Below, in pieces: positions 21,217 to 48,100 of a stretch of DNA of 64,000 bases. The stretch lies in NCBI GenBank assembly GCA_047495785.1, contig JBLDXI010000046.1, positions 682,001 through 746,000 on the forward strand, given 5' to 3'. This DNA comes from Lepidodermella squamata. Taxonomy: Eukaryota > Animalia > Gastrotricha. The notes under the pieces were generated by a model that saw only the letters and a list, made by a program, of their open reading frames with translations, made no database searches and was not told the DNA's origin. Position numbers and translations under genes: made by a program. The stretch's first letter is position 1. Each line of letters opens with the position of its first letter.

Positions 21217-21981
21217 TCAATTATCAGCAAATATTTGGACGAAATAATACAAATTAGGACTGTTGGGAACTCCGACGAATGCGAAGCCGAATAATTGATA
21301 GTCCTCATTTAGAACGTTAGCCACTCTCCTTGTTGATTTCATCGCCAATTCATGAGCTTGCTCCAAACTGGTGGCAATCATTAGATTTTCCGCGAAACGT
21401 CCGGCTTTAAATCCGGATTCCCGTAATTTCTGGCCCAAACTTGTTGAAAGCTTCGAATCCGACAATACAGGTGAGATTAGATCAACTGCGGAGAGTAGGG
21501 CGATCTTGCCAAGATCTTCGTTGTACTCCAAAAGAGTCAGACCCCACATACTTCGAGCTTCGTTGATCATTTCCAGCATTTGGAGGCCTTTCATGTTGTA
21601 CCATTGCATCAAAGACTCTGGCGATGAGGATAGGGATGAGAGAAGTTCCGCATCCAAAGCATGAAGGTAGGGTTGATCTTCGATGGATTCTCGGGCGACT
21701 CCGCAGATGCTGATTTCGTCCGCTTGAGATTCAGTTGCGTCAGATTTCGAAATGAGGCCTTGTTTCAAAATGCATTGGCCAGATGATTTCCAGGTGAAGT
21801 GGGAGCAGTCTATCCCTTCCAGGCATAGCTTAGCACATTGGTCTGCGCTGATATCGGATAGAACGGATAGATCTTGGTTGTTATCGAATGTGCAGGAAAA
21901 GGCCCAAATGCCATGCCATGTTATCGATTGGGAGCTGACTGCAACGGCAGATAGAGAAGCGAGAATGAGATGAGTAAGCAT
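21217..21981 (-). CDS. Secreted PAN/Apple + CAP (SCP) domain protein, copy 1, intronless
   Basis: Signal peptide; WAFSCTF..DL...CAKLC...CSHFTW...CILK (Apple/PAN_4); MLEMINEAR..L..AENL..AH...NVLNEDYQLFGF...YFVQIF (CAP). Confidence 0.8.
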   Translation of the reverse strand: MLTHLILASLSAVAVSSQSITWHGIWAFSCTFDNNQDLSVLSDISADQCAKLCLEGIDCSHFTWKSSGQCILKQGLISKSDATESQADEISICGVARESIEDQPYLHALDAELLSSLSSSPESLMQWYNMKGLQMLEMINEARSMWGLTLLEYNEDLGKIALLSAVDLISPVLSDSKLSTSLGQKLRESGFKAGRFAENLMIATSLEQAHELAMKSTRRVANVLNEDYQLFGFAFVGVPNSPNLYYFVQIFADN

Positions 21982-23251: not shown

Positions 23252-24067
23252 TCATTGGCCAAGAATTTGATAGCTTTGATCGACAATAGACGTGTCATTA
23301 GTTGCAGCGTAAATTTCGCTGAAGATGTAAGTATCCGCTTGGCTCATTATCGGTACCAGTGCGAAGGCAAACAGCTGATATTCATTGCTCACTAAAGTGT
23401 TAAAGCTGGCTGGGTCTCTTATAAAAGCTTCATGAGCTTGTTGAATTCCATTGCTGACCACCAAATGCTGAACAGCTTTCGTAGCTTTGAATGAAGATCG
23501 TCCAAGCTTTCTGACCAGGTCAGGGACAGGTTGAGGTGTTCCTTGCCTGAAATTCTTTGGTAGGGTCCTGATTGCAGCCATTTGGAGTAATCCATTAGAT
23601 TCCAACGGCATCAAGCCTCTAGCTCGGCGGAAATCGTTGACTAGTCTCAACAGCTTGTAAGACCAACGAATCTGCTGAGCTACAAACGCATCGCCACCGT
23701 TGAAAACGGATAGCAGTTCTTTATCCAGTTCGGGAAGTCGAGCTAAAATCGGCCCATTTTCAACAAGTCGCACAACACCGCAGATACCACTGCCCACGGG
23801 TGAGGTGATAGCTGTTGCATTTGCTCGCGAAATTTCACCTCGCATCAATTCGCATCGAGCCTCTTTTGAATTCCAGGTGAAATGAGTGCATAACATTTCG
23901 TCGATGCACATTTCGACGCATAGCGATGCAGCTACCCTAGCCAGGCCTCGGTACTGGCTATTAGTGTCACTGAATGTGCACTCGTTACTCCAGATGCCTC
24001 GCCATTCCAAGTCAGCAGCACTGCACAGGGCAAAACCTCCAACCAGTAATGCAAATAATTCAAACAT
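23252..24067 (-). CDS. Secreted PAN/Apple + CAP domain protein, copy 2, intronless
   Basis: Signal peptide; WSNECTF..CVEMC..CTHFTWN..CELM; LLRLVNDFRR..L..AHEAF..YQLFAF. Paralogue of 21217-21981. Confidence 0.8.
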   Translation of the reverse strand: MFELFALLVGGFALCSAADLEWRGIWSNECTFSDTNSQYRGLARVAASLCVEMCIDEMLCTHFTWNSKEARCELMRGEISRANATAITSPVGSGICGVVRLVENGPILARLPELDKELLSVFNGGDAFVAQQIRWSYKLLRLVNDFRRARGLMPLESNGLLQMAAIRTLPKNFRQGTPQPVPDLVRKLGRSSFKATKAVQHLVVSNGIQQAHEAFIRDPASFNTLVSNEYQLFAFALVPIMSQADTYIFSEIYAATNDTSIVDQSYQILGQ

Positions 24068-24515: not shown

Positions 24516-25029
24516 TTATCGCTTATTCGGCCTTACTTTTCCTTCCATAATATTTTTGGCGAGAATCTGAGCCCAAATGAAGAATGTCCCTTTTTGCTGG
24601 CGGATCCATGCATGATCGATACCTTCGCTTATGTTGCAGCTTCTCCACGAAAACGCGCAAGCTGTATAATTGACTTGAAATGAAACGCTGTATATTGCTG
24701 CAATCTACAACTGTTTCGGGGCTTGAGATTTTCTTCATAGATGAAGGAAAAAGAAATTTTCCAGAAGAAGAACTGATGGAGAGGTTGGGCTCATCGTAAT
24801 AATCCGATCTTATCGAGTCATTATTTAAGGTAGATCCGCCGCTAATTCGTTTTGACCTGGCTTTTACATTTTCAAGGTTTTCGCAACGTTTGCGGTACAG
24901 ATTAGTCAAAGCGATAGCCGTAAGCTTTACAAGCGGCATGTTTAGCGGGGCTTTAGGGTCGGCAGTAGTTGTGCTAGTAACAGCGCAAAACAATGCAGGT
25001 ATTGCCAATGTTAGAACTGCAGTATTCAT
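24516..25029 (-). pseudogene. Secreted 4-Cys helical family, copy 1, frameshifted by a 20-nt deletion
   Basis: Homologous to 26561-27076. After RSCM the conserved QQKGTFFIWAQILAKNIMEGK lies in another frame. Confidence 0.75.
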
Positions 25030-26560
25030 TTTTTGCTGAAATCCTTGCAATGGATACTTGCAAGAATTCGAAGTTCCAGGTTAAGCCGAGTAAATATTTT
25101 TACCTTGCTTTCTCTTTAACAATTCCAAATATTTTTCGCCAGGGTCAAGTTACAAAGCATAGACTGTCCATATTAGTTAGACCAAAAAATGGCATAAAAA
25201 TGCGAGGGCGCTACGCACATTTCAGTGCACTCAACGCTCGATTTCCGAACTGTTCGCGGAAAATGTAAAACTCCGCCTCGTTCCCGTACAAGTATGAACC
25301 AGAAACGTGAAGTTCTTCCGGCTGTATCAAATATGGTAAAATTTTAGGTTCGAATATTTGAACATAGCAGGATCTCGAGATGAATCCATAGCCATGATAT
25401 ATTACTATTTCATTATTTTGCTCTAGTTTGTTTGACCGAGATCAGACCATTAGAATTCTTTCCGGCGGTCGATGATTACTATAGCGAAGATCCCTAATCT
25501 GCATGAATCTAGGTTAATCTGTCAACCTTTTTTGCACATAGGCCCATTCTCAAATAGACGCCCAACCAAATAAAGGATAAATTTTCGATGTGACTTGTAT
25601 GGCAATCCGTATTAGGATGATTCAGATGGCGGAAGTAGAATTAACAGTTAAATGGATTAAATTAGCGATAAAAGAGTTATATTTCATCCGAATAGCGCTA
25701 TTATACTGATCAATAGCTCATCAACGATCGGAGATTTGAACTGTTTGAACGCGCTTTAAAGTTCCAAGTCAAATACAATGAAGGCTCTTTCGCGTGCGTC
25801 TCAGTTCTCAGTCCAATAGCTAATAATTGCAGGGGCGATTGTGGGCAGTCCCAGCGATAGGGAAGGCTGAAGGCTGGAAAGAATTTCCGCTAATGTTGGT
25901 CTCATTCTCCCCCACCTTCCGCTGCATTTTACGAACTTTCCCATAGTTCGTTCCCCTCTTCCGCTAACATTTGTGCCGGTATGTAGGACACCTTTCCCAG
26001 CCCTGATCGTCGGCTATTAACGAGTGAAGGGGCTTTGGCGACGAAACCGTAGCTGCCGAGATGTCACTTCATAAGAATATGAAGGGAGTATCCTGAAAGG
26101 GAATAAACAAGATCAGAACGGCATTGATAAAAAAAATGATATTCATTAGAGATTGGACTTCGATTTGAGGCATTTTTCGAAATCAAGGGAAATGGCCCAG
26201 CCTTTTCTCTGAAATTCTGAACTAGAAAGGCGGGAACCGCATCATTACACCGAAGTAATACTCATTTCGTGACATCCTTTTTTAGCGTAATATTAAGCTT
26301 AGGATTCTAAGGTGATATGATCCGCTGTTGAATAATAGGGTGCTGGGACGTATTTTATTTATAATTTCCAAGCAATTTCACACCTGCAATAGTATTCAAT
26401 AAAATGCTGAAATAAATAAGGGAAGGGCCATGCTCGACATGGCGTTTACGGTTCGAAGAAACGGTCGCAAAAGCTAAATAATGTGATCATAAGCTTAATT
26501 TATTCAAAATGACACGTGTAAATTGAGTGTGTTCGGTAACATGAGTTTGGATGGAGGAAA

Positions 26561-27076
26561 TTACTGCCGACCCTTCGAAATTGTTTTTCCATCCATGATG
26601 TCTTTGGCCAGAATTTGAGCCCACATGAAGAAAGTTCCTTTTTGCTGGCAGATCGTCGCTGAGCTGAAAAGTTCCATGCATTCTCGATACCGTCTTTTCT
26701 GCTGCTGTTTCTCCGCGAAATCATACAAAGCGTCCAGATGGTTCGAAACCAATTTCGGTATATTGCTGCAATCTAAAGCCGGTTCAGTAGTTGAGACTTT
26801 CCTAGTCCTCGCAGAGGAAGGAAACCTGTTGGAAATTCTAGGATCAACAGTTTGTGAAATACTCGGTCGTGTCGTCACTCTGTTCGGGCCTGGCGTAGCA
26901 ACAGTAGTGATCACCTCTTGGTACTCGCAGCGTTTACGGTACATGTTAGTCAAAGCGACAGCGGTTAGCCTCACCAGCGAAGTGTTCGGTGCAGATAGAG
27001 GTTCGAAATGACTATCGCCAAGACCAACATTGAGCTGGAGTATCATAACAAAAATTAGAGCTATTGTCGAAGTCAT
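26561..27076 (-). CDS. Secreted 4-Cys helical family, copy 2 (family not recognised)
   Basis: Signal peptide; LVRLTAVALTNMYRKRC - P/T/S linker - DCSNIP...QKRRYRECMELFSSATICQQKGTFFMWAQILAKDIMDG. Confidence 0.85.
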   Translation of the reverse strand: MTSTIALIFVMILQLNVGLGDSHFEPLSAPNTSLVRLTAVALTNMYRKRCEYQEVITTVATPGPNRVTTRPSISQTVDPRISNRFPSSARTRKVSTTEPALDCSNIPKLVSNHLDALYDFAEKQQQKRRYRECMELFSSATICQQKGTFFMWAQILAKDIMDGKTISKGRQ

Positions 27077-28153
27077 CGAACTCAGGATATGAGCATGAAT
27101 TCAGATTACAACTCGATGTGCCAGCCCAACCACTCTTTCAGAGGTTAATATATATCCCCCTTACCATGATGATCGCGTCTCAAATTCCCAAGCATTTTAG
27201 GCATGTGATGTTGGCATTTACCAAACTAATAAATTGAGCTAACAGGCACGATGCAGGATATCCGTTCAAAACCTACTTACTGAATGACTGAACTCCCCCT
27301 CCCTCCTGCGCTTATTTTGAGCGGCAATAAGTACTTCCGATTGACTCATATCCGCATGTTTCGTTACAGTTGCTCGCGCAATCGGACCCTTTGGCTGTGA
27401 GCGAGGAGGATTGTTGGGATTATAGCTTCATCGCCCCCTTTGTTATTTATTTCCAGTGCGCTAAGTAAAAAAGCTGACCCCTCCCACCTTCCGACAGGCC
27501 AACTTCCCACATGGGGACACTGAAAGACGAGCCTATAGCGTAAAATAGGCTGAAGCTGTATCTTATTCGACTGCCAAGCGGATGACTTCCGCAGTACTTC
27601 CGAGATCGATGGCTCCAGTAAATTCTTTAGTCACCCCGTTATTTCCTTTGCCGAGTCTCGCTTACATTCTATCTGCACCCACTATCTAATAGTGGCATTG
27701 GAGAAGCCTTTACAAGCGATACAGTATCTATTACAATGGAACTGATGCTGAAAGTGCCTATAAATGATAACCGAAGCATCTCCTATTTATACGAAATCAG
27801 CAGAAATTAGCTAAAAAAATGCGGAAGATGTGAGAAGTTCAGGACTGACGGGAGCCTTCTATACCAGTTCACCGTAGCAAATGTTCATCTATCTAATCTG
27901 AACTGGCTTTGCATATTAGCCCTGGATTCAAGTGCTACTTTCGAACTTTCGATAAATTCGAACTGCTCCAGGATTCTGCACGAATGTAGATTTTTCATTA
28001 CTGAGTACTTATCGTCTTTTTAATTAGCAACAAGAAAATAGATAATATTATACTTAACTAATATTCGGTAAAGGTGAAATGAATGCAAGATTCAAGGTCG
28101 AGGCAAAATTCCATAGTAATTTATTGATATTAGAAATTAAGCAAAAAGGCATT

Positions 28154-28657
28154 TCAAACAGCAGCTGTTTTCCCGTCTAAAATATCTTTAGCTAGAAGAT
28201 GAGCCCACATGAAGAAGGTTCCACGTTGATGACAAATCGACGATGAACCGAATAGCTTCATGCACGTCTGGAACCGTTGTTTCTTTTGAATATTTTCCAA
28301 GTAGCTATAAATCACGCCTAGCTGGCCCGTAATCAATGCAGGAAAGTTTTTGCAGTCTATGACATTGTTTGCGTTACTCAGCAGTGGAAATGGTGATACA
28401 TTGATGCTGATTGGGGAACGTTTATTAGCCATGCTCGGTTCGAACAGCGACGGAAAAACGGTGACAGGGGTTGCCGAAGTAGGAGCCAATACTGGGACGG
28501 CTTCTTTCAAGCATAGTGTTCGGTAAAGATGCCGCAAGGCGACTGCTGAGAGTTTCATGATGGAGAACTCCTTCGTCGCTCTATCTCCGCTATTTTTCTC
28601 AGCCATTATGATCGGTATAACGAGTAGCACAGCCGATAAAATAGTTGCAATCGCCAT
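28154..28657 (-). CDS. Secreted 4-Cys helical family, copy 3
   Basis: Signal peptide; IMKLSAVALRHLYRTLC...DCKNFP...QKKQRFQTCMKLFGSSSICHQRGTFFMWAHLLAKDILDG. Confidence 0.85.
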   Translation of the reverse strand: MAIATILSAVLLVIPIIMAEKNSGDRATKEFSIMKLSAVALRHLYRTLCLKEAVPVLAPTSATPVTVFPSLFEPSMANKRSPISINVSPFPLLSNANNVIDCKNFPALITGQLGVIYSYLENIQKKQRFQTCMKLFGSSSICHQRGTFFMWAHLLAKDILDGKTAAV

Positions 28658-29887
28658 GTTTTTAATAGTAGTGAAGTGATGTGAGAGTGTTTAGTTGTTT
28701 AGTTTGAATCTGAAGTCAATACGCCTTTTTACTTCTCACATTCTAGATAAGAGTCGTAAAGGTCATTTTACATGTGGGCGACCTGATATTCGTTCGCCTT
28801 AGACATGGCTTCCGGCCAGCACAAGGCTTTCCTTCTGTGACCTTCTGTGAACGCCTATGACGCTTTATCGAGTAGGGAAAGCAGTTTTTTGTATTCGAGA
28901 TTCGTATGCGTGCGACATAGGATACGTAACATTTTGCTGATAGATATGGATGTGTCCATTTGCACGATCCATATCCTCATCGTCATTCATCGATCAGTAA
29001 ATTCCAGTTGAATATCTTAATATTTCTTAGCTGAATAATTTGAAACAATACCTTAAGAGATATCGCTCTCTTGGCAGTTTGAACATGCTGGCAATTATGC
29101 AAAAGGTTTCAGATGATTTTAAAGATTTTACGTCAGTTTTACAATAGGTGTAAGGACGAAAATCTATAATCCTCTTCCGTAAATTTCAAGTTTCTCCGGA
29201 AATTCTTCACGATTACCCGAGAATTCCAGATACGCCGTCGTCGTTCTGTCATGGAATTAAAGTATGGATAATCCCCTCATTGAACAACTCAGCTTATTCC
29301 CTGAGTGTATCTTGGTACATATAGCTTGTGGCGGAAACCAAAGAACATGATCGTGGAACAGGATGAGCATTTCCGAAGAGCTAGTGACGAGAATATGCTC
29401 ACGCGTTTTTGAGGAAGCTAGGAACCAAATGCCGGATGTTCATATGCTTTCTATAGCTGTTTTATAGATCGAAAACTACTCTTGTGTTCCATCCGCTGTG
29501 TCTGCCGCAACTTCCTTTTGCTAACACGTGACAACAGCAAAGCCCACACTCTTGCACCACAGAAAATGGACCGAGCACTGAGCGAAACTCCCCACAGGAC
29601 GAAACAGACACCTGAAAGGCATCTGCTATAGCCTTAATGAAATTTTTATAGGCCATGGGAATCGCAAAGAAAGGTATAAATCGTCCATAAAGCTATGGGA
29701 TCAATTTTAGGACGTTGGATATCGTTTGATGTTCTCTGCTAGTCCAAGGATGAAGGCGAGGCTGCAGCGTTCCCGCAGCAGTAAACGACCAGCCCGAGCC
29801 CCGTATATAATTGGCTCAAGGCTTAAGAATAAACTCGTTTGATCTGGAAGAACACCACACTCATAATGAAAAAACACTAGATCATTT

Positions 29888-30366
29888 TTATTCTGAAATA
29901 CTTTTCTGAAAAATGAAGATTAGAATGAATGCTGAGGATATTAGCGTGAGACTTTCCTTGCGTTGTTTGGCACCAGAAGTGTCTAGTTTCGGTTTCCCGT
30001 TGCAATAACTCGTCCTACAACACCGCATATTACTGAGAACAACATCGGCTTGATTGTGGTCATCGGCCTCCGAGCAAGTCGCAAAGCTATTTAAACATCC
30101 TTGAATAATCGCGCCTCCTGTTTCCGTGGTCTGTAATGTATGGATCATAGTTAGCGAATGAAACAAGGTTTCGAGCTTACATAACAGAAAGTTCCTTGGC
30201 AGAATGGTGGCAGCAATTCGCCGGTTTGAACACTGATAGCGTTGTAGCAGTAGACAACCTTTGGATTGCTCATATCGGGTTCATTCATGCCCGAGGTCTT
30301 GCCGATGCTAAGAATAAAGAAAACGACCGTTGGCAAGAGAGGAAACATGCTTATCCAATAGCTCAT
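29888..30366 (-). CDS. Ly6/uPAR three-finger-type protein, probably GPI-anchored (2 exons, intron about 30131-30180)
   Basis: Signal peptide; VYCYN...C..TFCY|TTETGG.IIQGC....C...CCRTSYCN; hydrophobic C-terminal tail LISSAFILIFIF. Confidence 0.8.
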
Positions 30367-31429
30367 ATCTTCGATTAATTTCAAGTTAACTACAGCAGAA
30401 AGGAAAGAAAAAATGCAGATGTAAATTCGGAGACAACATTATTATTATCATATTATATCCCAGAAGTATGTAGTAAATAGTTTGTTTGGATGTTTTTTTA
30501 GCCCTGGCGTGGCGCTGCGCTATAGAGCCTTGTATATACCTCACGGTGGGGCATGTATAATACATTTTCTATTTGTTGTTGATTGCTTGTGTGTATGCGG
30601 TATGCGCTACAGCAGAGTTCTTTGTCAAGGATGTTTTTTACTTATTGAGTTGGTTTCGCAAGGGCCTGGCCGCGCATTCCCTTTGTCCCAGTGCACACTA
30701 GCATTAAAAGTCGGCGGTTTTCGCTCGAATTTTCTTATGTTGTTCGTACTTTGTTTCACATGGATGCTCACGATTCTCGCGAAAACCTGCGCATGTTTCA
30801 TTGAATTTTTTATCCGATTCGTTTGTGTAACCACAGCCGCTACATTTGCTAATATTTTCAGTGAACGGCATACAAATTAATTGTAGCAATCCAACCTAAG
30901 TTTCAAGTCCAAAGTTGATTATCGATTTCATCGCTATAAAATTAGAACATGGACGCTCCGACAATCTTCCGAGAATTAGGAATGTTAAAAGGGCAAAGAA
31001 TTTCCGTCCGTTAATGCATTCTACTTTCTGGCGTTTCGACATCCTATGTAAAAAATGCAATTTTTTGAACGTCTCAGGTTTTCTCCTAAATGAACTTGAA
31101 ATCGCTCAGAAATGAATTATTATAGACAAAACGCCATATTACAAAAGCTGATAAATTTATATGGAAACAAGAAAAAAATCATTATCTGAGATCAGAATAT
31201 CGGCAGAGGCAGGAACATGATGGCCATTCAATTGGTTTCGAAGCGAAAGAACCATAAGAGCAAAAACTTTACCACCACTAGTCACTGTGTAGCATTTTAT
31301 CGGTAACAAGATACTGATTCCTATATTTCGGTAATATGTAGTGTCTTCTAAGGAATGTATTCATCATTTTATTATTGAATTCCTATTAACGCTGCTAAAA
31401 ACGTCATAACAATGAAGAAATGAAGAATT

Positions 31430-31984
31430 TTAAGCAGCTACAACGGTGTTACCCGACATTATGTTCTTAGCTATCATATTAGCCCATATGAAGAACGAGC
31501 CCCGCTGATGGCAGATATCAGCCGAGCTGAAGACCTTCATACACGTTTCGAGCCGCTGTCTTTTCTGAATATCCTCCAAAAACGTTTTCACTGCTTGCAA
31601 TTGGCCTTTTATCATGTCGGGAATCTTGCTGCAGTCGAATTTGCTCGTCCGAGATCGCAAGAGAGGTTCTCCGTGGAGATTCGCAGGTTTTGGCCGTAAC
31701 GGACCTTTCGCCGGTTGATGAAAAAGCGGGAAAACTGTTATTGGGCTTGGTGTGGTGGAAGGAAGGACCGGAGTTTGGTTAACACATCGTTTTCTGTACA
31801 AATTGGTGAGAGCAGCAGTTGATAGCTTCAACAGTGTCAACTGCTTGTAGCCATTCGAGTCAAAGTTCGCAAAGCTAGACACAACATTCGGCATGAAAAA
31901 CGCGCCGGTAGTTGCCAAGATTATAAATTGAGATTGCATCGATGTAATGAAACTGCGAAGTGATAATTGTGATATGTCCATCAT
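31430..31984 (-). CDS. Secreted 4-Cys helical family, copy 4 (probable start at 31939)
   Basis: LLKLSTAALTNLYRKRC...DCSKIP...QKRQRLETCMKVFSSADICHQRGSFFIWANMIAKNIMSG. Confidence 0.85.
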   Translation of the reverse strand: MMDISQLSLRSFITSMQSQFIILATTGAFFMPNVVSSFANFDSNGYKQLTLLKLSTAALTNLYRKRCVNQTPVLPSTTPSPITVFPLFHQPAKGPLRPKPANLHGEPLLRSRTSKFDCSKIPDMIKGQLQAVKTFLEDIQKRQRLETCMKVFSSADICHQRGSFFIWANMIAKNIMSGNTVVAA

Positions 31985-32437: not shown

Positions 32438-34297
32438 TCAAAACCTGGTCATCAAAGTCATGAAACTGAGAAGTGAGACTAAGGATTCAACTATTCCGGC
32501 ATTGTTAGCTTTTCTGTCCGTTTTACTGTCCTTCGTTTTCAGTGCCATGTTCAGCTGCTCCTTTACATCTCGATTGCAATTTCGACCAATAACGGGCAGT
32601 GGCTTGGTTCGGCAGGCTTCTGTTAATTGTCTTACTTGCTTAGCCGATAGCGGCGAATCATAAACTGAGACACAAGCCATGTTATCGTTTTCAAACAATC
32701 CATACTGGGTGTTCGTCTCATGATCGTAAGCTCCGCCCACTGAGATTGAGGTTGTAGCCGATGAGAAAATCTTAGAATCGATTTTAGTCCAGTTCGAATA
32801 CAGTGTATTCATATCAAACGGCAACTTTTTGCCTGGCCAGGCAACAACAGTCGGAGTTTTATGGAAATTATAGATCGTAAGCCGTTGACTCGAAGAATCG
32901 TACGTAACAGCGTAAAATTTCCAATATTTACAAACTTGAGAAATTTCCATCTTACCAGCAACGCTTTGTTTGATCTTATCGAATACTTTCACTACGAGTA
33001 AGTAGTCTTTCGAGCAATGAAGTGTTAAGGAGGCTTGGTCGAATTCCATACTAAACAGCCCAGTCTCGCGGCCTTCTTTCCAGATCGGATCCCTCTCAAC
33101 TGCTGAATTCACTGAAGCGTAAAACGCAAACGTGAACCCTGATGAAGTAACAGGAATGTTGTTGTAAGTAGCCAGGGTTCGATTTTCATCTCTCTTCATG
33201 TTGATGCAACAGTAGCCAACTGTGTAACTGAAGTAGCCAACAGAATTGCCATAGGGCGAGCTTGCTTCAACCAGGGCACTTCCAGACTTTTGAGCTGGTT
33301 CAATCCCGCAGATCGAATCGGTAAATCCACTTGTTTTATCGAGATGTGTTTCGAAGACCAACGATTTTGGATTAGGCCACTGAATTCCAAGTTTTACTAG
33401 AAAAATCTAAAATTATCAAAAAGTTTGATTTAGGCAGTAACCAACCTTCGCCGTCACGTTTGCAAGCAGTAGAATCGCCAAGCTGTCCAGGCGGCATCAT
33501 GCAAGATTCCGGTAGTGACTTTACTTCATCAACATTCAATGCAACGCTGTAAATTGAGAAACAGAACAAGTGATCCCCTTTTCGAACGCCGTATCTCTTG
33601 TAAGTATCCCTATCCAGGGCATCACCCAGGGTGACCTGGGCCCAACCTTCGCCTTGAATGATCGGCTTATCCATCCGGCCAAAGACAGTTTTCGTCAAAT
33701 TTGAGCTATTGAAGGCGTAAATCGTGAGTTGATTTGAAGCACTGTCATGAGAAATCATATAAAATCGCCAATAATAACCGCATACGTTCGAAACATTGAG
33801 TGATAAGGTGGCGTTTATGTCCTCTTTATCGAAAATTTTGACCAGCAAATTGTTGGCCCAACACACAGCTGTAAGATAACCAACATCTGTTTCCAGCTCT
33901 AGCAAACCGACTATTCGATCTGCCGTTGTATTTGCGTAGAATGAAATGCTGAAATCCGATTTCAATGGAATTGGTCGATAAATCGCGAGGTACTCATTTT
34001 GGTCACTGATTTTCGCCGTTGAAGTGTAAGAGGCGTTTCTATAACCAAACGGGCTGTTGCCCTGGCTTAAAGTCGCCGACTTACTAACATTTACCGGGGC
34101 TAGATCGCAAATGTTATCATTTAGGTCGTTGCTAGCATTCATTTGGACATGAAAAACTAGCGAATCGTTACGAGGCCAGTTGGTGAGCGCTGCAACTATC
34201 AAATTGGAAAAATTAACTGAAATCACACGAGAAAGATTTTACCAGTATTTAGACATATTGGAAGCGTAATGAATAGAATAAACATGTCCCAATTCAT
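32438..34297 (-). CDS. Secreted tandem double LamG/ConA-like protein with a GPI-like tail (3 exons)
   Basis: Signal exon MNWDMFILFITLPICLNT and an intron lead to ORF 33372-34226. A 49-nt intron (GTTGGT...TTCTAG) gives VKLGIQWPNPKSLVFETH and joins ORF 32438-33361. The C-terminus is NNAG plus a hydrophobic tail. Confidence 0.8.
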
Positions 34298-35135: not shown

Positions 35136-35945
35136 TTAATAGTGCTGACGGGCTTGGAAGGTAATAACCAAAGTTGTCATAGCCAGGAGCTTTGAATAGC
35201 TTAAAATGATGGATCCATTCGAATCCTCATCCTCATCGCACTGGCACATGATGTTGCCATCGTCGTCGTAAACCAAATCTGGCGTTGACTCGCACTCATC
35301 TTCGCAGTCAGCACTACAAACAGGCCCAGCACGGGGATCGAACTTGTTCACGAAGACAGCCCTTCCGCAGCCTGACCTCAGGTGATCTCGCAAGGCATTG
35401 CCAAAATGCTGGCAGTTGTTATTGACGACACTGTAACTTCCTTTTCGTTGGCGGTAGGTTTTTACAAATGATACAACGTCATCACGCGTGCATGCACTAG
35501 TTCCATCCAAATGCCACGTAATTTTCGTTCCTCCTGACTTGTACTTGTATTTGGGATCGTCAATGTCTAGTTCTGCATAACCGTACGATTGTCCCAATTC
35601 ATACGTGAATCCGCGATATCTCACTGCTAAATGTTTCAGCTTATAATTCCACTTACGGCTACTGGGTGAGGACGACGACAACTTTGCCCATCCATAGTAG
35701 TAATAATACCCACGTCCATCACCCGCGGCATTACACGTATTGGCTTCGTTTTTACAAATAGTGCTGTTGCTGTTGCATCTGTTGAATGACCTCATCGAAT
35801 CGCAAGATGCACTTCCAGGTGTTGGATCTTTGCAGTAAAACTTGTCGCACTTGCATGTATTTTGGCAGGTATCAAATGGAGCCAAACCGCAGCTGGATAA
35901 GCCAACGATTGATAACGCAATTAGTATTTGAGCAATCAGCTTCAT
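35136..35945 (-). CDS. Secreted, possibly GPI-anchored PPPDE/DeSI-like (permuted papain-fold) cysteine peptidase flanked by Cys-rich modules
   Basis: Signal peptide MKLIAQILIALSIVGLSSC; Cys-rich N-module; HLAVRYRGFTYELG ... YSVVNNNCQHFGNAL (His, then NCxHF); acidic Cys-rich module; SNG plus a hydrophobic tail. Intronless. Confidence 0.75.
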   Translation of the reverse strand: MKLIAQILIALSIVGLSSCGLAPFDTCQNTCKCDKFYCKDPTPGSASCDSMRSFNRCNSNSTICKNEANTCNAAGDGRGYYYYYGWAKLSSSSPSSRKWNYKLKHLAVRYRGFTYELGQSYGYAELDIDDPKYKYKSGGTKITWHLDGTSACTRDDVVSFVKTYRQRKGSYSVVNNNCQHFGNALRDHLRSGCGRAVFVNKFDPRAGPVCSADCEDECESTPDLVYDDDGNIMCQCDEDEDSNGSIILSYSKLLAMTTLVITFQARQHY

Positions 35946-36006
35946 CTTCAATAAAAACTTCAAACACGCCTGGCGTGATGCCTTTCAAGATGGGGGCGAA
36001 TTGTGT

Positions 36007-47028: not shown

Positions 47029-47538
47029 TCAAGGCCACCATTTAGGGTCTTCTGGATCACAGCGTTCTAGCCTAGACACGGCAAACAACTCGACGTAGTA
47101 ATTGAGCCTCCGATCGTCCAATCGATGTGCTGATCCGAAGCCGAATAACTTGTAATCACCCAACATATTCGCCTCATCGTCCTCGGATTTAATCCAAGCT
47201 TCATGCGCACTTTCCGGCGTCTCGCCATACGCGATATTTTCCGCCAGCAGACGAGGTCCTTTGTCCGGCCACATGAAACCAGCCCTCAGTACGCGCTGGA
47301 TCGGTCTCGAGCCATCCGAGCCGAAGCTGTCGAGGAATCCATGCAAAGCCATGTCCTCAGCATGAGACTGAGCGGCTTCTTTCAGCTTCGAATTTAAACA
47401 CAACTGCCGTGACGTAGCATTTTTCGACGTCCGGTATTCGTTAACCAATTTCACCATTTCCTTAGCCGGATCACGCCTCCAATCAGCATTGCATAAAGAG
47501 CTTAGGTAAAATAAAGTAACAGCCAAAATTTTCAGCAT
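47029..47538 (-). CDS. Secreted single-domain CAP/SCP protein 1
   Basis: Signal MLKILAVTLFYLSSLCNA; LCLNSKL.EAAQSHAEDMA..GSDGSRP..R..RAGF..AENIA..ANML..YYVELF..ERCD. Confidence 0.88.
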   Translation of the reverse strand: MLKILAVTLFYLSSLCNADWRRDPAKEMVKLVNEYRTSKNATSRQLCLNSKLKEAAQSHAEDMALHGFLDSFGSDGSRPIQRVLRAGFMWPDKGPRLLAENIAYGETPESAHEAWIKSEDDEANMLGDYKLFGFGSAHRLDDRRLNYYVELFAVSRLERCDPEDPKWWP

Positions 47539-47596
47539 AACAAAATCAGCTAATAAATAACATCTAAAATAAAAACAAGTAAATTTATGTAAAATT

Positions 47597-48100
47597 TTAA
47601 TAATTTTCAAAATCGTCGCAAGTTTCGCTGGCAGAAGACGCAAAAAGTAGTACAAAGTAGAAAAAGCCGGGTTGATCTATCAATTCTGCCGCTCCGAAGC
47701 CGAAGAATGCCAAATCGTGAGCCATCATGTTTTCGTAATGTGGTACCGAGTTCGTCAAAGCTTCATGGGCTCGCCTTATCCCAGTGTTGTAGACAAGATT
47801 TTCAGCGAGCCGCGAGACCCGGAAACCAGCACGTCGAACTCGATCGACTGGCGACGTTCCGTCAGAGCCTGTGTCGTCCAAAAAGCCATTCCTAGCCATA
47901 TCGATTGCATGGGCTCGAGCTGCTATGCTTAGGGTTTCACTTAAACACAACAATGGTATGGATTTCTCGCGACGAGCCGAGTTGACCAAGAGTAACATTT
48001 CCGCTGCCCATTCTTCGTGGCGAAATTTCAAGCAGTAACAAATCGAATTGAGAAGGCAACAAGTGATAAGTAGCGTAGATGCTGTACGAACGGTGATCAT
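47597..48100 (-). CDS. Secreted single-domain CAP/SCP protein 2
   Basis: Signal peptide; LCLSETL..AARAHAIDMA..GSDGTSP..AENL..HYENMM..ETCD. Probable 5'UTR intron at about 48137-48189 and TATA at about 48342-48350. Confidence 0.88.
   Translation of the reverse strand: MITVRTASTLLITCCLLNSICYCLKFRHEEWAAEMLLLVNSARREKSIPLLCLSETLSIAARAHAIDMARNGFLDDTGSDGTSPVDRVRRAGFRVSRLAENLVYNTGIRRAHEALTNSVPHYENMMAHDLAFFGFGAAELIDQPGFFYFVLLFASSASETCDDFENY

Follow-up and report, generated by a model that had tools for sequence, protein, structure and literature searches.

The saposin-like proteins, which include the amoebapores and the nematode caenopores, are secreted, disulfide-stapled helical proteins with six cysteines and a five-helix fold, and they form multigene families in bacterivores. 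The ALKAL/augmentor (FAM150) proteins, in turn, are small cationic secreted ligands of ALK/LTK that join a variable, unstructured N-terminal part to a helical C-terminal domain with two disulfides. To our knowledge, nothing has been described of the secreted signalling or defence molecules of the gastrotrichs, and the titles and abstracts of the gastrotrich neuropeptide literature revealed nothing relevant. The first genome for this phylum has, as its report presents it, only just been published (PMC11660948). Here, we examine a cluster of four related genes that occupies positions 24516-31984 of a 64,000-nucleotide (nt) stretch of genomic DNA from the gastrotrich Lepidodermella squamata (hereafter the window: GenBank assembly GCA_047495785.1, contig JBLDXI010000046.1, called C46 below, positions 682001-746000).

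We consider it fairly probable that three of the genes in this cluster are functional and the fourth is a copy inactivated not long ago, and that all four belong to a large, undescribed and lineage-restricted family of small exported proteins. On balance, we also favour the view that the products of the working genes are intact cationic, disulfide-stapled secreted proteins that serve as effectors or ligands. The family is undescribed but of a familiar kind, that of the lineage-restricted, tandemly expanded, small secreted protein stapled by cysteines.

The gene cluster and its broken copy

Copies A (28154-28657), B (26561-27076) and C (31430-31984), all on the minus strand, are intact single-exon open reading frames (ORFs) of 167, 171 and 184 amino acids (aa), the last counted from its first ATG; poly-A signals (AATAAA or ATTAAA) lie 29, 57 and 57 nt, respectively, downstream of their stops. 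In copy C, the hydrophobic signal-like segment begins only near residue 20, and its true start may therefore be Met16 at 31939. The three proteins are 34-42% identical in pairwise comparison (paralog matches have E values of 1e-28 to 1e-36, well outside what chance would give) and share a four-cysteine layout (C1-x52-C2-x29-C3-x9-C4 in A), the four cysteines being residues 49, 102, 132 and 142 of A, residues 50, 103, 133 and 143 of B, and residues 67, 118, 148 and 158 of C. In copy A, a signal-like segment (residues 1-19) is followed by helix 1, which carries C1, and then by a linker (residues 50-101; 28355-28510, minus strand) whose 52 residues between C1 and C2 are 35% Pro/Ser/Thr and are modelled as disordered. 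The protein ends in a C-terminal domain (residues 98-167; 28157-28366, minus strand) composed of a long helix, the C3-x9-C4 turn and a return helix, and within this domain lies the two-cysteine module that defines the family.

The same parts are readily recognized in all three intact copies. Helix 1 conforms to the amphipathic motif K/R-L-S/T-x-x-A-L..L/M-Y-R..C, which ends in C1; the linker has 50-52 residues and is 35-40% Pro/Ser/Thr; and the dipeptide D-C (C2) precedes a conserved block, Q..R...CM..F.S..IC.Q+G.FF.WA...AK.I..G, that holds C3 and C4. The module signature, R-x3-C-x9-C-x5-8-[FY]-x-W-A-x3-A-x2-I-M-x-G, is found near each C-terminus, and in the alignment of all four copies the invariant columns are the Cys, Y-R, D-C, Q, R and C-M. 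The N-termini are hydrophobic (mean Kyte-Doolittle value of 2.0-3.2 over 10 aa) and the candidate cleavage sites have small residues at -3/-1; by hydropathy and the -3/-1 rule, A, B and C would be exported by means of an N-terminal signal peptide, in agreement with what the first-pass annotation of this DNA had proposed. The mature proteins are cationic, with an isoelectric point (pI) of 9.6-10 and a net charge of +8 to +12, and the core alone has a pI of 9.2-9.5.

The divergence among the intact copies is distributed very unevenly. The proportion of synonymous differences (pS) is 0.62-0.85, which means that synonymous sites are saturated in all three copies; for this reason the ratio of nonsynonymous to synonymous substitution rates (dN/dS) was abandoned and the proportion of nonsynonymous differences (pN) was compared with pS region by region. 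In the core, from C2 to the end of the protein, pN is 0.26-0.36; in helix 1 it is 0.34-0.39; and in the linker it reaches 0.47-0.63, close to pS. The core is under purifying selection. The sequence of the linker evolves almost freely, while its length (50-52 residues) and composition are kept in A, B and C, and this comparison of linker and core rates upholds the earlier suggestion that the linker is hypervariable. It is most improbable that these ORFs are decaying remnants or chance frames and not functional genes. One copy is indeed broken, and the expression of the genes is predicted from sequence; nevertheless, three ORFs of 167-184 codons have stayed open despite saturated synonymous sites, the pN of their core is far below pS, and their invariant Cys, Trp and Ala are common to relatives from other species. 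It is on this pattern of selection that a family of chance ORFs was rejected.

The fourth copy, D (24516-25029, minus strand), had been read through as intact, but it is frameshifted. In the DNA alignment, 7 nt (24600-24606) take the place of 27 nt of A, B and C, a 20-nt deletion that sits directly after the C3-Met codons and removes the C3-C4 segment; C4 is lost as well, its former codon (24600-24602) now being CGC. Upstream of the lesion, the first frame (24600-25029) is open from the signal peptide to ...SCMDP; downstream of it, the ORF as now read enters a foreign frame and stops at 24523, with no poly-A signal within 232 nt past this stop. The old frame (24516-24599) still reads QQKGTFFIWAQILAKNIMEGKVRPNKR and then a stop. 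Because both this frame and the 143 upstream codons remain open, the lesion looks recent; alternatively, the deletion could be an artefact of assembly from amplified DNA.

Family size, distribution and phylogeny

The four copies of the window, at first taken for a four-member family, belong to one sub-branch of a far larger family: the genome of the same animal (121.2-Mb assembly, 151 contigs) has at least 150 places that match it, a number already reached with copy A alone as query. When this genome was searched with A2, a profile built from the alignment of 20 four-cysteine members, the best 150 of 295 candidates were scored, all at E<1e-6. About 22 of these 150 places match the whole profile and have the four-cysteine layout of the window copies (the long type); the other ~125 match only its last ~50 residues, which is to say the two-cysteine module (the short type). 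Several pairs of loci on separate contigs have equal or near-equal scores (C25/C26, C43/C103, C33:925-929 kb/C58:356-360 kb and C33:345 kb/C28:1695 kb), and these have the appearance of haplotypes left uncollapsed or of segmental duplications that are very young. Distinct genes in the haploid genome must therefore be fewer than the places, but would still clearly exceed one hundred provided that the unscored candidates resemble the scored ones.

The four-cysteine loci are themselves clustered. Besides the four copies on C46, of which D matches only partly, in two pieces, and stands outside the ~22, there are four at C30:766-777 kb, eight at C33:793-805 kb, one with two internal stops at C33:900 kb, two each at C33:925-929 kb and C58:356-360 kb (near-identical pairs), two at C60:354-356 kb and one on C1. 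In the A2 alignment C2 is invariant and C1 is conserved in at least 90% of the rows, and across the four-cysteine clade the linker ranges from ~15 to ~100 residues. The short-type members that were extracted are ORFs of 70-150 aa, arranged in dense tandem arrays on C3, C42, C43, C54, C19, C29, C25/C26 and other contigs, and they end in R-x3-C-x9-C-x5-8-[FY]xWA...A..IM.G plus a short tail. Sixteen of the 22 long-type ORFs scored, a count that skips the shifted, module-less frame of copy D, take their start from a Met that lies within helix 1 or immediately ahead of it, and lack a hydrophobic N-terminus (e.g., L007:84-575 and L008:1246-1713); in these genes a signal peptide, if any, would have to lie on an upstream exon, unlike in the single-exon copies of the window.

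Beyond this genome, the family is found among anonymous environmental sequences. An exhaustive HMMER search with A2 through 1.84 billion protein representatives yielded 58 relatives at E<=1e-3, of which nine also passed E<=1e-10; the module recurs in these public relatives, and most of them begin with a signal-like segment. The 30 that were looked up all come only from ENA metagenome or Logan read-archive assemblies, and none of the 30 has a protein name or an NCBI, UniRef or JGI record. A word-index protein search gave no match with copy B and only six ENA proteins with a further family alignment (A3). Exact-protein look-ups of A, B, C and C from Met16 retrieved no records, although records of the same genome possibly fall outside the set searched. 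A profile search of public proteins had been recommended, and it is this route that led to the 58 relatives. The run and sample accessions of these relatives gave no match in the literature.

Two of these relatives were traced to their contigs, and both come from species other than L. squamata. The first, P0002 (Logan, run SRR23086389), reaches no more than 46% identity with any part of the L. squamata assembly. Its contig of 1201 nt has a G+C content of 53% and holds a head-to-tail pair of family genes, the 5' one partial, from which it follows that the tandem arrangement also occurs in another, more GC-rich species; the same run holds both this four-cysteine member and a short one (P0014). 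The second, P0015, lies on a 77-kb ENA contig (ERZ23486787, scaffold_401), a stretch that recurs in three other ENA assemblies and that also encodes Egalitarian-type, sulfotransferase, MFS and VWA7-like proteins. This VWA7-like protein is 48% identical to the L. squamata assembly over its best stretch of ~270 residues, whereas its identity to any named protein, those of rotifers included, is at most ~35%, and 25-27% over most of its length. By this measure the present genome is the nearest sequenced relative of the bearer of the contig, which points to another gastrotrich or similarly unsampled kin.

A phylogenetic tree of 81 module sequences was built on 71 columns only, and many of its forks are unresolved. 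Nonetheless, the four-cysteine type forms one clade of 24 rows (support 96/87), made up of A, B, C, 18 other genes of the genome and three public proteins, P0001, P0002 and P0006, the last on a long branch; the gene placed nearest to copy A lies on contig C30, a position that is weakly supported. The inclusion of proteins from other species in this one supported clade means that the four-cysteine layout is a derived sub-branch of the two-cysteine family and is older than the split of these species. Similarly, P0014 groups with the genome genes of one locus, L028 (support 97/91), and at least some subfamilies have thus been kept across species.

Predicted fold and proposed precursor processing

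The supposition that these proteins are helical agrees well with their AlphaFold2 models. In the model of full-length copy A (20 sequences, mean pLDDT 70), helices span residues 26-53, 102-136, 139-144 and 148-160, and the block-mean pLDDT is 81-87 over most helical stretches and 52-63 in the linker. A separate model of the last 70 residues, built with 81 sequences (pLDDT 88.8, pTM 0.67), has helices at 8-39, 42-45 and 53-63: the first is 32 residues long, the second makes a single turn between C3 and C4, and the third, the return helix of 11 residues, comes after a loop. In the 81-sequence alignment (A5) C35, C45 and W54 are invariant, and R31, S41, F51, A55, A59 and I62 are present in at least 90% of the rows; these conserved residues, the Arg and the Ser apart, are ones through which the return helix would be packed against the long one.

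The fold resembles nothing specific among those compared. Foldseek found no match to the PDB at E<=0.001 for either model, and the best VIA-align scores, Z 6.9 and 4.3, were to unrelated generic helical hairpins and are below that tool's own meaningful level for helical models. In ESM Atlas the best score was 0.83, also below the meaningful level; the profile had one chance match among PDB sequences (E 1.2); and Pfam gave no family at E<=1 for the four window proteins and nothing consistent for 23 family members. The first-pass annotation was therefore right that no known family can be assigned, Pfam, PDB sequences and fold searches being at one on the point, but a cytokine-like helical bundle, which it had entertained, was rejected for want of any fold match.

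The same annotation had proposed two disulfides, C1-C2 and C3-C4, and this pairing is the one we favour. Among members with a signal-like N-terminus the cysteine count is mostly two or four, and the C3-C4 spacing is nine in 42 of 43 short-type genome members and in 45 of 54 public ones. The short branch contains C3 and C4 and no other cysteines, and the two stand a near-fixed distance apart; a bond between them is therefore the likeliest arrangement, which would leave C1-C2 as the extra pair of the long branch. In the model of copy A, helix 1 carries C1 close to its end and C2 falls where helix 2 starts, positions that suit a disulfide closing an antiparallel hairpin.

The arrangement of a basic cluster, a cysteine loop and a terminal Gly-Lys had suggested that the proteins could be prohormones, in which cleavage before C3 and after the Gly would release a disulfide-looped, amidated peptide of ~35 residues. 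The signal peptide expected of such a precursor is predicted by hydropathy, and some features of the family are in keeping with the idea: a basic residue is present at the fourth position ahead of C3 in 20 of 20 long, 43 of 43 short and 49 of 54 public members; copy B has KRR and copy C has KR at this site; and a Gly follows the last helix in 19 of 20 long members, with K/R after it in 14 of the 20. What is fixed, however, is a single Arg and not the basic cluster that had been thought conserved. A dibasic pair at the fifth and fourth positions before C3 occurs in just 7/20 long, 22/43 short and 19/54 public members, most of the long type having Q-R instead. The amide-donor motif G-[KR][KR] is found in one member of each set (1/20, 1/43 and 1/54), and many members either have a tail of the GSE, GN, GQ or GL kind or have no Gly at all; even in the window, the G-K reported for three copies out of four follows the conserved block in A and B, and in D is present only in the old reading frame. 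Moreover, the basic motif lies within one continuous helix (block pLDDT 87-96), and conservation runs straight through it. With dibasic sites that are not conserved and a G-basic-basic motif that is rare, the prohormone reading is weak; we regard it as improbable, and as the principal explanation it was rejected on these site statistics. The case calls for some caution: features that recall a prohormone may also come about within a helical domain that is folded, and the statistics of the family as a whole do not support processing.

Function and comparison with known systems

We thus return to the view that these are intact, stapled proteins. The protein would have four parts: a signal peptide; an amphipathic helix with C1 at its end; a Pro/Ser/Thr-rich loop of 50-52 residues that would be fast-evolving, probably disordered and possibly glycosylated; and a C-terminal domain of ~65 residues. 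In this last part a long helix would begin at C2 and be closed by C3, with C4 ten residues further on and the F.WA...A..IM.G helix folding back. The C3-C4 bond would staple the turn, and C1-C2 would both join helix 1 to helix 2 and close the variable loop. The result would be a compact cationic helical protein that acts outside the cell uncut, and not as a hormone precursor. As the fixed residues are mostly those that pack the core (Cys, Phe, Trp, Ala, Ile), the paralogs would differ mainly in their surface and loop, a pattern that fits a diversified binding or effector set.

Several considerations weigh against this interpretation. Secretion of A, B and C is read from hydropathy and the -3/-1 rule, expression is predicted from the gene sequences, and the disulfides are deduced from cysteine counts and helix positions. 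The single K/R that follows the conserved Gly in 14 of 20 long-type members is compatible with monobasic processing. Finally, a cationic conserved scaffold would fit a role in defence, as a ligand or in structure equally well.

A conserved, mostly core-defined scaffold, a free linker, broad divergence of the sequence away from the fixed columns, very numerous tandem paralogs, positive charge and a bacterivorous host are features that point to diversified extracellular binding or effector proteins, and among specific functions our tentative preference, held at rather less than even confidence, is for an antimicrobial or digestive defence effector of a bacterivore. A structural or other role is possible, if a little more doubtful. 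We favour the defensive or digestive role over the idea that the proteins are intact signalling ligands of the cytokine, growth-factor or pheromone type, paralogs of which would act on a receptor through the C-terminal domain. A ligand of this sort is a minority possibility for which there is nonetheless something to be said: the proteins are cationic, their variable N-terminal part is joined to a helical C-terminal domain that is small, conserved and stapled by disulfides, and the subfamilies kept across species (P0014 with L028; P0001 and P0002 within the four-cysteine clade) fit conserved, paralog-specific roles. Yet more than 100 paralogous ligands would be unusual, neither helical cytokines nor other ligands were matched by fold, and the Pfam scan of the larger ORFs in the window (PAN/CAP, protease, ankyrin, dehydrogenase) revealed no receptor gene.

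The surroundings of the cluster are rich in genes for secreted proteins. On the minus strand of the window, an ORF at 21217-21981 has a PAN/apple domain and a CAP (cysteine-rich secretory protein) domain, another with a PAN domain (23252-24067) adjoins the cluster, and a third (47029-47655) has a CAP domain; further ORFs that were scanned encode an aspartyl protease, ankyrin repeats and a short-chain dehydrogenase. Two more minus-strand ORFs have weak Pfam matches below the gathering score, to Laminin_G_3 (32438-33361, E 0.015) and to a PPPDE peptidase (35136-35963, E 1.9e-4).

In evolutionary terms, the family is probably among the larger lineage-specific expansions of the secretome in its phylum. 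It is conceivable, though speculative, that the C-x9-C helical module is an unseen fold family confined to the gastrotrichs and their nearest relatives, a repertoire of more than 100 genes for extracellular effectors or ligands in which the four-cysteine form closes a hypervariable, possibly glycosylated display loop by means of a second disulfide. The module, a domain model and orthologous subfamilies across species together provide a handle on how a microscopic bacterivore defends itself or signals.

How, then, do these proteins compare with the systems that they most resemble? From class I helical cytokines, which are likewise secreted and helical with few disulfides, they differ in having two long and two short helices and a disordered loop of 50 residues in place of an up-up-down-down bundle. 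The prohormones of the calcitonin/DH31 type, and of the CRH/ELH type as regards the amphipathic helix, yield amidated helical peptides with a disulfide loop; like them, the present proteins have a predicted signal peptide, basic residues ahead of a conserved C-terminal segment, a loop between two cysteines and a Gly beyond the conserved part; here, however, the dibasic and G-basic-basic motifs are not conserved, the C-x9-C loop lies between two helices of a folded domain, and conservation reaches ~30 residues upstream of the supposed cleavage site. The likeness to ALKAL/augmentor is closer, since these too are small, cationic and secreted, with a conserved helical C-terminal domain held by disulfides. 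The present proteins nevertheless have another cysteine spacing, they exist in more than 100 copies where vertebrates have one or two, and no Pfam match at E<=1, sequence relative in the PDB or match of fold connects them to that family. The saposin-like antimicrobials have six cysteines where there are four here, and neither the SapB model of Pfam nor a structural match links the two; but they are small, secreted, disulfide-stapled helical proteins encoded by expanded families, and it is with them that we favour a functional analogy.

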